A stretch of DNA of 7,196 bases from Paraphysomonas bandaiensis (Eukaryota > Protista > Chrysophyceae): positions 1-7,196 of the forward strand of contig CBFFRP010000227.1 in the NCBI GenBank assembly GCA_965644295.1. The letters are read 5' to 3'. Made by a program: the position numbers and the translations under genes. Of the stretch, positions 1,118-6,975 are shown in pieces. The notes under the pieces were generated by a model. It was not told the DNA's origin, did not search any database, and saw nothing but the letters and a program-made list of their open reading frames with translations. Each line of letters starts with the position of its first letter. Within the stretch, counting starts at the first letter, position 1.

Positions 1118-1467
1118 GTTTTCACTGTCGGTGGAAGTCACTTGCACACCATATTATGGAATGATCCCTACATGACGCGTCATGAGAGCTCCATACATTA
1201 CATCTGACATAACCACTAGACTAATTCAACTGTGCTTGATACGCTGATGTGCTCAGATTTTTGTAAATGGTTGTGTAGCATTGTGTAGAGCAGCTTACAC
1301 ACAATGACCTGGTATTTCACTGTAGTGTCTGTAGCTCACCAAGAGTGACATTGATGCACAAATGAAACAATGAAACTTAGTATTTACTATGTTTAAAATG
1401 AGTGTGGACGACCAACGTCACCCTGACAGCGTTGAGCTGATTGAAAGCGACGAGGAATCTCTGGGTT

Positions 1468-1471
1468 GTCA
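1468..1471. repeat. Target-site duplication GTCA (left copy)
   Basis: GTCA directly abuts the LTR at 1472 and recurs at 6524-6527. A 5-bp match fails (TGTCA versus GTCAC). Confidence 0.9.
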
Positions 1472-1860
1472 TGTAATCTTTCTGATGAGAAAGACCGTGT
1501 TTACAACGTTTTATTAATTTAAAGTGCTTCCCAAACCGAGAATACACTGTCCAGAACACCAAACCGGTGAAACTGCCTCCTAACACAAGCAAACCGCGAG
1601 TATAGAATGAATTAAATTACGTTAAAACGTGTAAAGAAAAGAAATGAAAACATACAACACTCTATCTTGCTGTGAATCATCTACAGTTTACAGTATCATA
1701 CTTGTAGTTATACGGGACTTATATCCCTTCAAGAATACAGTAACCGCAATGTATACTAAATAAACTGAAAATGAAAGTACAACAGCATGCTACACCTAGA
1801 GTACCGCAGTATAACACCGTATAACTCCACGTATAACAGTAACTACAGGTATGCGTGACA
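1472..1860 (-). repeat. 3' LTR (389 bp)
   Basis: Direct repeat of 6135-6523, immediately preceded on the minus strand by the polypurine tract. Confidence 0.97.
1510..1515 (-). promoter_or_regulatory. Candidate polyadenylation signal AATAAA in the 3' LTR
   Basis: Minus-strand AATAAA lies 38 nt before the LTR end. The copy in the 5' LTR is at 6173-6178. Confidence 0.4.
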
Positions 1861-1877
1861 CTACCCCTTCTCCCTCC
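1861..1877 (-). other. Polypurine tract (plus-strand primer)
   Basis: The minus strand reads GGAGGGAGAAGGGGTAG directly before the TGT of the 3' LTR, the canonical PPT position. Confidence 0.92.
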
Positions 1878-2107
1878 AGCTAGAGAAAAGAAATAAGAAT
1901 ACATATCAGGGATAGATAGAAGTAATGCTTGTATCAGCCAATAAAGCGTCATTCCAAGCATTAGCAAATAAAAATCCAATTCATGAAATAAAAGTACTAA
2001 ACATACGTAGAGCAATATTATGATAATAAGTATGAATAATAGTATGAATGTTATAATATATATATGATATAATCATGAAATAGTAAATAAATAAAAGTAA
2101 TCAACAA

Positions 2108-3274
2108 TTAGAGGAGAATAGTAGGATATTGTTGGCAGAATGCAGCATCCACCAATACCATAGTAGAAGGATCAAATTCCGTGACTCGACCATAGCAGTG
2201 AACGTCATAGGCACTCCATTCATATGTAGATTGAAACAAAGGGCAATAGAGGTCTATACGTAACTGGCGACGGCCAGCCCACCGCACATAAGAACACTCG
2301 ACAACATACATCGTTGTATAACAATTCGGCAGATTAAGTTCATCATAGAAATCTGAACCCCATGCACGCAAATCTACATAAATTGTTTGACCAGGTGACA
2401 CCCCTTCGATAGGTATACGTTTCAAACGTGCACGTTCAGATTTTGCCATAGCAGCAGAAAACAACAAAGGGAACAATTGAGGTTTCTGCTCACAGAACGA
2501 CTGAAATTGCGAGGTGGAAGCGATATCCTGTGACCATGGAAGCCATAATAACGAACCATCTTCAAACTGAACTTGGAATTCCATTCGAGAACGAACCTCT
2601 GGATCTCCTCGATATGCAATCACAGCAACCACGGTATACTGGTTAAAGTCAATTTGCGCAACACGATATGCCTGCTCAGGCGTACCAAAGCACGGTTTGA
2701 GCCATGACATGTGCAGCACAACTTCAAAACGCATCACAACATGCATGCATGTGACATCAGCCTTATACGTGGAAATCACTTCGTAAGGACCTTTGAAACG
2801 AGGGTACAATTTACTGGGCTTATGTTGAGTTGGATCCAGCCGCAACAAAACTAAATCACCAGGCTGATATTCGTTCAAAGTATGTGCAGGCGTGGCAGAC
2901 TTGCGCTTGTCTTGGATCTTGCGCTGAACATCCATGGCAACCGCTCGAATCTTCTGTAAGTTCTCATTCAAAATAGACACGTAACCCGCAGCAAAAGACT
3001 CATCCATAGTCAGTTCCCCCAACCGAAAATATGGAATATCAACGGTACCAAACACATATTGAAAAGGAGAGAGTCCAGTCTCACTACTGACTTCATCATT
3101 CAAAATGAACTGAATCAACATGTAACACTCAATATCCCCCCATGAATCTTGCAACCTCTCATCGTGGACTAAACCCTGAAGAAATCGCAACAGCTCTCGA
3201 TGAGATCGCTCGACCATGTTGGACTCATGTCGATTAGTTAATAACACTCGAAATCGAACTTCAAACCACTTCAA
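2108..3274 (-). CDS. pol: N-terminally truncated integrase: C-terminal catalytic core, GPY/F module, chromodomain and C-terminal extension
   Basis: RHESNMVERSHRELL matches the region of the catalytic Glu (compare the PQSNGxVER consensus). TGLSPFQYVFG, YQPGDLVLL and KLYPRFKGPYEV form the GPY/F module. YTVVAVIAYRG...FQVQFEDGSLLWLPW is chromodomain-like. The frame is open from 3316, with TGA TAG upstream. The HHCC finger and the first two catalytic Asp motifs are not recognisable. Confidence 0.9.
   Translation of the reverse strand: MKWFEVRFRVLLTNRHESNMVERSHRELLRFLQGLVHDERLQDSWGDIECYMLIQFILNDEVSSETGLSPFQYVFGTVDIPYFRLGELTMDESFAAGYVSILNENLQKIRAVAMDVQRKIQDKRKSATPAHTLNEYQPGDLVLLRLDPTQHKPSKLYPRFKGPYEVISTYKADVTCMHVVMRFEVVLHMSWLKPCFGTPEQAYRVAQIDFNQYTVVAVIAYRGDPEVRSRMEFQVQFEDGSLLWLPWSQDIASTSQFQSFCEQKPQLFPLLFSAAMAKSERARLKRIPIEGVSPGQTIYVDLRAWGSDFYDELNLPNCYTTMYVVECSYVRWAGRRQLRIDLYCPLFQSTYEWSAYDVHCYGRVTEFDPSTMVLVDAAFCQQYPTILL
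2490..2641 (-). other. Chromodomain of the integrase (approximate limits)
   Basis: Pattern Y-x-V-x-x-V/I...F-Q-V-Q-F...W-L-P-W followed by a helix-like segment (SQFQSFC), located after GPY/F as in chromoviruses. Confidence 0.75.
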
Positions 3275-3453
3275 TAGAAACTCCTCATAGAACTCAGCAC
3301 TCTCATATTGTAACTCCTATCACAACGGTAAGGCTCACAACAACCTCAATCCATTCCGAAATAAAATGAATAAAACCATGATAAATATTGCATCATCATA
3401 AATAATAAGATGAACTTTGAAACAAAAGACACTTGCTGGATTTGGAATTGAAC

Positions 3454-4395
3454 TTACTGAATTGATGGCGGCCCTGGCCCATGCTCCGCAATAAACACAA
3501 GATTTGAAAGCAATAAACTCAAACTCTTGTTCAACGTAAGAAACTGAAAAACGTAACAAGCTGCATCTTGCTTTATCAGCATAAACAAGGAATATTCAAA
3601 CACCGAATAATTGAACACTGAAAAAGGTACGACTGACATGCGCTCGATTACATCTGTAGCATCATTGGCAGTAGTCTCTTTTCCAAAGGAATTTGGAATT
3701 ACCATTTCAGGATCAATGGCAACATGCTGCATAACAACTTGAGAATTATCAACAAAAATCTCAGCCTTTTCCACTGACATCTCCATAAAATTTATAAGTC
3801 CACCAAATGAACAGGGTTCTGGCATCAACTCATCTTCCGGAGCAACCCCTGCATTAGGCTTCCCCCATGGCACTCGTGTAGGAACTTTAGTAATTTTGTT
3901 ATAGTCAGTTTCGAAATCATCTATCGAATAGTTAATTTGGCACTCCACGCCAGCAAGCAAGTTTAGATGCATTATAGTATCACCCGAATTCGCATTACTC
4001 GTAGACTGAACCATTTTACAAAACAATTCTGCGAAGTGCTCGCATATAGCTGGCAAACCGATTATAACTTCTTTAGTCAATCCATCCAACACATACAGCT
4101 TTAGCTTAGCACTGTAGATCTTTTCGCAATCCTTAAACTGCATTGTAACAGGAACATATCCCTTTATCTGAACTTCTTTTCCATTGGCTACTCTCACTCG
4201 AATTGGCCTTTCCACTAAATGCTTTTTTAACTTTTCTCCAACTTCGTCCAAATACTCCTTAGAAATAAAATTATCATTGCTCGATCCCGAGTCGAATAAA
4301 GCTACATCCACTACAATTTCATCATTATCATTATTTATTATAATCCCTTCTCTGTGTGCTGCTCTCCAGTATTTGCTGGTAGACATCTTATACAA
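3454..4395 (-). CDS. pol: Retropepsin-type aspartic protease region of a truncated pol, with a C-terminal tail of uncertain origin
   Basis: Active-site motif VALFDSGSSNDNFIS (DSG at 4285-4293), flap-like IRVRVANG, and C-terminal hydrophobic-Gly motif EVIIGLP. The frame is open from 4422, and the first ATG is at 4386. No RT motifs follow. Confidence 0.85.
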   Translation of the reverse strand: MYKMSTSKYWRAAHREGIIINNDNDEIVVDVALFDSGSSNDNFISKEYLDEVGEKLKKHLVERPIRVRVANGKEVQIKGYVPVTMQFKDCEKIYSAKLKLYVLDGLTKEVIIGLPAICEHFAELFCKMVQSTSNANSGDTIMHLNLLAGVECQINYSIDDFETDYNKITKVPTRVPWGKPNAGVAPEDELMPEPCSFGGLINFMEMSVEKAEIFVDNSQVVMQHVAIDPEMVIPNSFGKETTANDATDVIERMSVVPFSVFNYSVFEYSLFMLIKQDAACYVFQFLTLNKSLSLLLSNLVFIAEHGPGPPSIQ

Positions 4396-4422
4396 CTGGG
4401 CAGCATGATAAGTAGAACCCGA

Positions 4423-4520
4423 TCAAAGATCATCAATAGGATCTGTGTCTCCCTGGTCCTCTTGTTCTCGCACAAGCATTCGCACATCCCCTTTCTCGTT
4501 TCCTAGTTTCCTCTGGTACC
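4423..4520 (-). pseudogene. Possible remnant of the Gag C-terminus, in frame with the protease and ending in TGA
   Basis: The protease frame reads WYQRKLGNEKGDVRMLVREQEDQGDTDPIDDL, then TGA at 4423-4425, then SGSTYHAAQLYKM. The segment is charged and more GC-rich than the AT-rich DNA upstream. No Gag motif is recognisable. Confidence 0.35.
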
Positions 4521-6057
4521 AAGGAACACTCCAAAGAAACACCAAGAATAATACTTTCCATATTATTCACAATCACACTTCTTTAATTCCATAATATACA
4601 ACCTCGAATCTCGAATTTTAAACATGAACAACAAGAAGTTCACACATTCCGAATATCGAACAAATAAATCAAGTTTGAACAATCGAACATGCTCCGCTTT
4701 TGAAATATCAAGACTCCAAACTTCTCAAATCTTTTCAACCAATGTAATAATACCATAATATTGTCTCAAATCTCTCGTACAACCTTTTCAAGAAGACACA
4801 CACAACTGAAAACCGTAAGTGTCTTATAACCCGTTTTGACAACTGAATCTGAAAAGTAATCAACAACCATCATACAAATATTTGTGCACCAAACTCTACT
4901 TTGACATATCTTATTTTGTACAATAATTGTAATTCATCCTCTCGATTTTAGAACGAAACAATATTTGATTAATGAAAATATCACCGGACGGACCAATCAA
5001 TAACCACCCCAATCAAAACATCATTCATCTCATTGGTCTTATATTTCAGTAATCATACGTAACGACTTCCCTCAGATACAACATTATAATATAGTAAACA
5101 ATAGAATGATCCACTCAACGCGATCTCATTGAAAAGAATCCAACAATAGAAATATCAACTGAAATAACAACAAGCTCGCAAAGTAATACCCCCCATTTTG
5201 AGTCTCGAAGTTAACCATCACTAGCATATATAATTCTTTCGCATGCAATAGTATTATCAACACCATACCTCCAAATATCATTGACACTTAACCATCGATC
5301 TCATACCCGATGCATAATACAATCGAACGATTGAAAAATACCAGCGACAAAGTTTTCAAAATTTCATTGACATGTTGTATCACTGAACCATATTCACTTC
5401 AACGTAACAGAAACTTCAATTTCGAACAACTTTCAATCAACAACTAACCATGAATTTAGACAGGTTAATTCATTGCATTTATGGATACCATATATTCAAA
5501 TTCAATCCCATTGCAGATCCAAAAAAACTGAGTAACCATTTTATAACCATTAACAAGACAATGAATATCTCCAACTCCTTCCTGTTTCCATTCATTCTCT
5601 TTAATACAAAATGCAAAGCACACTGAAAACATATTGCTCCAAATATACTTTCCTCATACTGAAATTACAACAGCACAATTTACATTCTGTTCACATAGAG
5701 GCAATCGCGTTCATTAAAAACTGTTTACTTCCTCTGGAATTAAACTTTCGTATATGAATCATATAGTATTGCAAAACTTATCCAAACCATACATGACCCT
5801 TGCAAAACTATAACAATAATTGCTTGCCATTGATGTTGAAACCATACCATTGATATTGAACAACTCTTTGCAGACTTTTAACCAATCTCAGACAATACTG
5901 TCATTCATTGAAACTTAATAAATTCACTGAAACCCATTCTTATACATTGAACTTAAAACCGAATTATTCTCTCGTAGTAGTCAGTATATATCACACAGGA
6001 CTATTGAGCATAATTTTAACTAGACATTATTGAATATGAATCACACTTCTCAAAAAC

Positions 6058-6134
6058 TCAGTTTATTTAGTATACATTGCGGTTACTGTATTCTTGAAGG
6101 GATATAAGTCCCGTATAACTACAAGTATTAATAC
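6058..6134 (-). other. Non-tRNA primer-binding region: 71-nt perfect inverted copy of LTR 6361-6431 (putative self-priming PBS)
   Basis: 6058-6128 is the exact reverse complement of 6361-6431 (and of 1698-1768). After a small internal loop, 6131-6139 pairs with 6351-6359. There is no TGG-initiated tRNA complement after the LTR. Confidence 0.8.
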
Positions 6135-6523
6135 TGTAATCTTTCTGATGAGAAAGACCGTGTTTACAACGTTTTATTAATTTAAAGTGCTTCCCAAACC
6201 GAGAATACACTGTCCAGAACACCAAACCGGTGAAACTGCCTCCTAACACAAGCAAACCGCGAGTATAGAATGAATTAAATTACGTTAAAACGTGTAAAGA
6301 AAAGAAATGAAAACATACAACACTCTATCTTGCTGTGAATCATCTACAGTTTACAGTATCATACTTGTAGTTATACGGGACTTATATCCCTTCAAGAATA
6401 CAGTAACCGCAATGTATACTAAATAAACTGAAAATGAAAGTACAACAGCATGCTACACCTAGAGTACCGCAGTATAACACCGTATAACTCCACGTATAAC
6501 AGTAACTACAGGTATGCGTGACA
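6135..6523 (-). repeat. 5' LTR (389 bp)
   Basis: Reads TGTCACGC...GATTACA on the minus strand. No difference from 1472-1860 was found by eye (offset 4663). It lies upstream of the minus-strand ORFs. Confidence 0.97.
6426..6437 (-). promoter_or_regulatory. Initiator-like motifs (TCATTT-TCAGTT), candidate transcription start in the 5' LTR
   Basis: The minus strand reads CTTTCATTTTCAGTTT. TCAGTT begins exactly at 6431, where the 71-nt self-complementary segment begins. Short motif, supported mainly by position. Confidence 0.4.
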
Positions 6524-6527
6524 GTCA
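6524..6527. repeat. Target-site duplication GTCA (right copy)
   Basis: GTCA lies directly after the LTR end at 6523 and matches 1468-1471. Confidence 0.9.
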
Positions 6528-6975
6528 CGATACAGGCGCCCTACCATTCTCTGTATTTAACGTGCATGATAGTGACATAAAATGTTGTTACGACGGTATT
6601 AGGTATACAAGGGAACACCTTGGTCCTAATGAAGCTATAGTAGCGTTTTACATGGCAATCAGAGTGCTAAGCATCGAGAAGGGATAGAGCACAATATGAT
6701 ACCGAGAGGTGTGATGCGTTCTCACTCGCTTTTGCAGTGACCTGTCAATGGATTTATACTTAGATTCGGTATTAACATTCAATAATGTACTTGGTGGAAT
6801 AACCCTTGCCACGAATGGGAATGGTTGCGCTGTGCACAACAGAAACTGCACAGGAGTTAGAATTGTGCAATCGTTAGTGATTGGATCTACATACTGGGCT
6901 AGTGATGGGCCACTACACCAACGCGGCATTGGGATAGAGGTAGTAGTTTATACCGCCTATCTCATTCAGCAGTAG
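6528..6975 (+). pseudogene. 3' part of a decayed ORF interrupted by the retrotransposon (5' part at 1389-1471), weakly SET-like
   Basis: Removing the element and one TSD copy joins ATG 1389 to TAG 6685-6687 as an 80-codon ORF. ORF 6748..6975 is in the same frame after three stops. Confidence 0.3.

Follow-up and report, generated by a model that had tools for sequence, protein, structure and literature searches.

A fold-back beside the primer site of one Ty3/gypsy-related LTR element in a marine alga: probable scar of a faulty round of reverse transcription

One LTR retrotransposon copy carries, directly after its 5' LTR, an inverted copy of 71 nt of that LTR. We regard this fold-back as probably (at roughly 65%) the scar of a single faulty round of reverse transcription and not as a working part of the family to which the element belongs. 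The structure of the fold-back, its uniqueness, the joints with short shared stretches around it and the hallmarks of integration can be observed directly. From them we infer in which order the events took place and which RNA was copied.

Anatomy of the copy and its fold-back

The window, the whole stretch of 7,196 nucleotides analysed, is an entire 7.2-kb contig containing a single LTR element on the minus strand. The parts that define the element and the fold-back are as follows.

1468-1471, second copy 6524-6527, no strand: target-site duplication, sequence GTCA
6135-6523, minus strand: 5' LTR, 389 bp, TG..CA, a direct repeat of 1472-1860; LTR position p is window position 6524-p
1472-1860, minus strand: 3' LTR, running from 1860 to 1472, bounded by TG..CA
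1861-1877, minus strand: polypurine tract, adjoining the 3' LTR upstream; in reverse complement, a run of purines that extends up to the LTR
6361-6431, minus strand: LTR segment copied in inverse (LTR 93-163), beginning TCAGTT
6351-6359, minus strand: LTR 165-173, found in all copies; pairs over 9 bp with 6131-6139, the LTR end and 4 nt beyond it
6124-6135, minus strand: 12-nt perfect palindrome AGTATTAATACT, which spans the LTR edge and includes the last LTR base; the family's primer-site zone
6058-6128, minus strand: inverted copy of LTR positions 93-163, with a private part at 6062-6122 (61 nt) and a junction pattern unique in the genome

The copy is a true transposition, as its identical LTRs, its 4-bp duplication and the empty-site contigs attest. 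The two LTRs agree at 389/389 positions and differ by ~2% from every other LTR of the genome. Target duplications of 4 bp flank four other copies as well, and the GTCA of the window is typical of the family. The empty site, with a single GTCA, is present in contigs from four sequencing runs, the joint 1467 to 6524 having four shared letters (runs X1, X3 and X4); the insertion is therefore recent and polymorphic. The locus thus varies between strains: at 1467-1473 / 6524-6548 the runs contain at least three distinct empty-site haplotypes, distinguished by C or T at 6528 and by the replacement of 17 letters. The left flank of the insertion (378-678) is itself a repeat, with a 94% match at 412-711 of L042 beside another copy on contig C566, and a short direct repeat (877-899 and 1100-1122) also lies in this flank.

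A sequence-only reading of this DNA had described 6058-6128 as a 71/71 reverse complement of LTR 6361-6431. A repeat search bears this out: the arms are 71 nt long, 100% complementary and 232 nt apart, and the arm at 6058-6128 also matches 1698-1768, in the other LTR. The same reading had seen a TA-versus-C loop followed by nine more base pairs, and these are present, 6129-6130 (TA) facing 6360 (C) and 6131-6139 pairing with 6351-6359 across the LTR edge at 6134/6135. It was also right that a TGG-type tRNA site is missing, TGG being absent within 35 nt inside the LTR when the sequence is read, and right about the polarity: the 3' end of the LTR arm (6361, LTR position 163) falls 6 nt away from the LTR edge, pointing into the LTR. 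Both ends of the inverted copy overlap its neighbours, since 6123-6128 (ATACTT) is common to it and to the normal primer zone, and 6058-6061 to it and to the downstream internal sequence. Within the LTR segment 6361-6431 lies a TATAAG, at 6381-6386. Folded as RNA, the window leader has a predicted energy of -180.8 kcal/mol (z = -18 against shuffles), a predicted fold far beyond chance.

Beyond the fold-back, the interior of the element is a mosaic of four blocks, named here with reference to a common non-autonomous copy (L031) and to an autonomous relative (L041).

4531-6061, minus strand: Block C, non-coding internal part of the non-autonomous element, L031 1418 to about 2980; abuts the inverted insert
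3760-4531, minus strand: Block X, autonomous-element piece, L041 2133-2904, with a protease-like DSG motif
3280-3767, minus strand: Block E, L031 948-1434, directly upstream of block C in normal copies
1861-3302, minus strand: Block F, common 3' part, including what remains of an integrase C-terminus

The element thus reads LTR plus 12 nt of primer zone, inverted LTR piece, then blocks C, X, E and F, an order permuted with respect to both L031 and L041. Five joints are private to it (6123-6128, 6058-6061, 4531, 3760-3767 and 3280-3302), with 1-23 shared bases, and no other genomic match spans any of them. At 6058-6061 the inverted insert joins L031 position 1418, about 840 nt being skipped. 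Block X differs at about nine sites from the four near-identical autonomous copies of the genome, and the pieces of the window derive from at least three different parental elements located elsewhere. The scrambled copy (1472-6523) measures 5052 bp, compared with 5053-5057 bp in normal non-autonomous copies (L031, L032 and L034), and the offset of its 3' block is 3222 versus 3221; this near-equality of length is an unexplained coincidence. A 313-aa open frame (3454-4395, minus strand) crosses the joint at 3760-3767, fusing the autonomous protease-like stretch (DSG) in frame to the gag-like C-terminal part of the non-autonomous element; an exact-protein look-up returned no record of this fusion elsewhere. 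Hypermutation of 4400-6060 was considered and rejected: the C-poor composition is also found in the normal element, and the differences are mixed substitutions and 1-nt indels.

The family and its primer zone

The common copies of the family are 5.06 kb long, and their coding content is limited to a gag-like ORF of 212 aa and the remnant of an integrase C-terminus; by Pfam, copies of the L031 type have neither RT nor protease. The 6.67-kb relative L041 has the same LTR and primer zone, with RT, RNase H and integrase in Ty3/gypsy order, and is of a type represented in the genome by the four autonomous copies mentioned above. LTR, primer zone and 3' end are common to the L031 type and L041 and RT is missing from the former, which would make it, judging by sequence, a non-autonomous LTR element mobilised in trans. 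The window copy itself possesses neither RT nor an intact gag.

In none of the other copies does the primer zone lead into an inverted LTR piece. When the genome was searched with 6000-6540, about 40 LTRs were detected, and all matches other than the window end 17 nt inside the element. The 5' junctions that were read directly (26 besides that of the window) all run on into one and the same normal sequence, which leads up to the gag ATG. The pattern formed by the LTR end and the primer zone with its palindrome occurs at 37 places in the genome; that of the fold-back junction occurs in the window only. Nor does the autonomous Ty3/gypsy partner carry the inverted copy; ocean metagenome contigs of the family lack it as well and have the normal sequence at this position. 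Head-to-head LTR scars, expected if the whole leader of a partner RNA were copied, were sought by pattern, and the search gave only opposite-strand normal copies, none of them exact. An outlier junction in a related family (C297:605827), examined as a candidate second scar, does not match the LTR of that family and was discarded. One TARA metagenome contig (L058, 1-520) contains purine tract, LTR, primer zone and gag in one piece, a layout that represents either tandem elements sharing one LTR or an assembly collapse of two LTRs.

The palindrome at the LTR edge has counterparts in related families. In relatives compared by their 5' regions, with LTR starts undefined, five different perfect palindromes of 12-14 nt lie at the same place in eight families having 48-75% RT identity. 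A perfect boundary palindrome that varies between families suggests that the family belongs with the palindromic-PBS Ty3/gypsy elements. Just past their palindromes, the distant relatives L054 (253-275) and L057 (150-174) have TAGTCCCAC in common, where the window family has TAGTCGG; the sequence at this position may be a second conserved element. In normal copies LTR 158-163 and 165-173 can pair with the primer zone (6+9 bp), and this helix appears in both the MFE and the centroid fold predicted for the normal leader. Comparison by RNAduplex with 200 shuffles detects LTR-primer-zone pairing at the 2% level in only two of the eight families. The helix is therefore not a conserved feature of the lineage, and the matched LTR and PBS changes which the sequence-only reading had proposed to look for among relatives were not found.

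A proposed course of events and its alternatives

We propose that RNAs of the non-autonomous element and of its autonomous Ty3/gypsy partner were packaged together, that the minus strand was built by switching among them, and that its synthesis ended about 840 nt before reaching the primer site. An end at that point would have left the plus-strand strong-stop DNA without an acceptor. Synthesis of that DNA would have gone beyond the primer zone with a sense LTR RNA as template, the ...AAGTAT (LTR 158-163) of this RNA being annealed to ATACTT in the right half of the palindromic primer site. Copying of the LTR RNA would have proceeded back to LTR 93-97 and the product would then have joined the truncated minus strand through four shared bases, after which the finished DNA would have integrated normally. 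Such an RNA would most simply be the minus-strand primer, which would have remained joined to the cDNA. Both ends of the insert bear on this scheme. The insert starts in register, within ATACTT (6123-6128), the six bases of complementarity between LTR and primer zone; it ends at LTR 93-97, where four bases are common with non-autonomous position 1418. Furthermore, the letters of the loop are of primer-zone type (TA) and not of LTR type, so that the copied strand would have ended at LTR 158-163 and not at the 9-bp helix.

A precedent exists in HIV-1, where proviruses carrying 7-54 nt of tRNA(Lys3) after the PBS, which define a deletion junction, have been ascribed to deferred second-strand transfer (PMC12657518). 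As in those proviruses, an intact 5' LTR and primer zone are followed in the window by tens of bases that continue the RNA annealed there, and the insert ends at a joint to downstream internal sequence. An in-register insert after the primer zone and then a deletion junction is the layout that primer read-through with deferred transfer would be expected to leave. Because the layout is the same, we read the window plus strand from 6058 to 6523 as the probable copy of an RNA-cDNA chimera, made of sense LTR RNA and then minus-strand cDNA. Unlike in HIV-1, the copied RNA would be the element's own LTR RNA instead of a tRNA, which is why insert and LTR make up an inverted repeat; the window copy also has three further template-switch joints, and its host is a marine alga. 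The number of joints is a difficulty for the scar reading, since four non-homologous switches and a deferred transfer are a lot for one cycle.

It is tempting to go further and to consider the insert (61-71 nt) as the copied primer, which would mean that the minus strand of a palindromic-PBS Ty3/gypsy lineage was started, in this event at least, by LTR RNA of the element itself. We put this forward tentatively, as a possibility with the balance somewhat against it. The LTR contains a near-copy of the palindrome, and the RNA would have been cut midway through it, after LTR 163; the 5' end of the RNA would lie at the TCAGTT motif near LTR 95, with which the far end of the insert coincides. From the TATAAG at 6381-6386, by contrast, a start near 6350-6360 would be expected, and the product would be no different if the strong-stop DNA had slipped onto a bystander leader RNA instead of copying a primer. 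Look-ups of exact gag proteins for transcript starts gave either nothing or metagenome contigs of DNA-like character, with breaks within the LTR or at its edge. Run X4, presumably an RNA run, has coverage on the autonomous-type blocks and on the LTR and zero depth on the non-autonomous non-coding core (window 4600-5999).

The principal competitor of the scar reading is an artefact of assembly or library preparation, in which a real insertion had its interior, fold-back included, mis-joined from reads of other copies or from a chimeric molecule. The evidence from the runs consists of their assembled contigs. At every private joint, contigs of all four runs pass into parental sequences, and no bridging contig is listed among them at these joints; this is not proof of absence, and it leaves an artefact some likelihood. 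The window being the whole of a short contig, the lack of support in run X1 (the best DNA run) for the letters at 2083, 2691, 4246 and 5917, and a total length nearly that of a normal copy point in the same direction. However, the flanks are contiguous in the empty-site alleles and the 4-bp duplication of the family is present; the LTRs are identical to each other while different from all others, and this divergence, together with the differences in block X, indicates that the window was not stitched from assembled copies. Moreover, mixing in a consensus would not yield blocks that are permuted and not collinear, and five chimeric joints within 5 kb are improbable for a library artefact. On balance we consider an artefact unlikely. 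Rearrangement of the DNA after integration, by template switching in replication or by repair with short shared stretches, could also have made the inverted duplication and shuffled the blocks, and the shared bases at the joints would fit it too; but the insertion is very young, with identical LTRs and empty alleles in all four runs, local events do not explain pieces from so many parental elements, and the insert lies exactly at the primer zone. We deem this quite improbable.

Lowest in our estimation stands the proposal of the sequence-only reading that the 71-bp duplex is the regular self-priming structure of the family, regenerated at every cycle, and an undescribed long-duplex priming system. 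Geometry and polarity suit it, as does the missing tRNA-type site, but the duplex is lacking in 36 other copies, in the autonomous partner and in the ocean metagenome copies, and the one copy that carries it is scrambled and defective in RT and gag. Absence from autonomous relatives was the very observation that the proposal had named as speaking against it, and we find the proposal extremely improbable. Part of its reasoning survives: copying of an LTR-derived RNA during plus-strand synthesis is still the simplest source of the perfect match, although not as a regular priming structure of the element.

Own-RNA priming and the meaning of the scar

The Tf1 and Tf2 elements of Schizosaccharomyces pombe self-prime (PMC5341516), the first 11 nt of the Tf1 mRNA pairing with the PBS, and similar self-priming has been predicted for the plant Tcn1 and TAR lineages (PMC6317226). 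The present family resembles Tf1 and Tf2 only in that a tRNA site is absent and the zone beyond the LTR has a complement within the LTR transcript; a 3' end made at the paired LTR stretch would prime into U5. It differs from Tf1 in that normal copies pair over only 6+9 bp, with an internal loop, and in that this pairing is not conserved in relatives. A Pfam search identified RVT_1, RT_RNaseH and Integrase_H2C2 and no chromodomain, SH3_Tf2-1 appearing below threshold only. Since neither the conservation of the pairing nor a chromodomain was found, we do not file the family with the self-priming elements of the Tf1/sushi type.

Taken by itself, the fold-back is a defect confined to a single dead copy. 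If transcribed, the 80-bp hairpin could feed small-RNA silencing of the family. What the window copy adds is that it may have recorded, for one event, the RNA that was in fact extended. If true, the copied-primer reading would mean that own-RNA priming had, for the first time outside the Tf1 group, been recorded at the sequence level, and it would fix the transcript start. In HIV-1, primer read-through was recognised through defective copies that trap extra primer sequence. The comparable scar described here suggests a cheap route to primer identification, namely to look in long-read data from these algae for further copies with inserts right after the palindrome.
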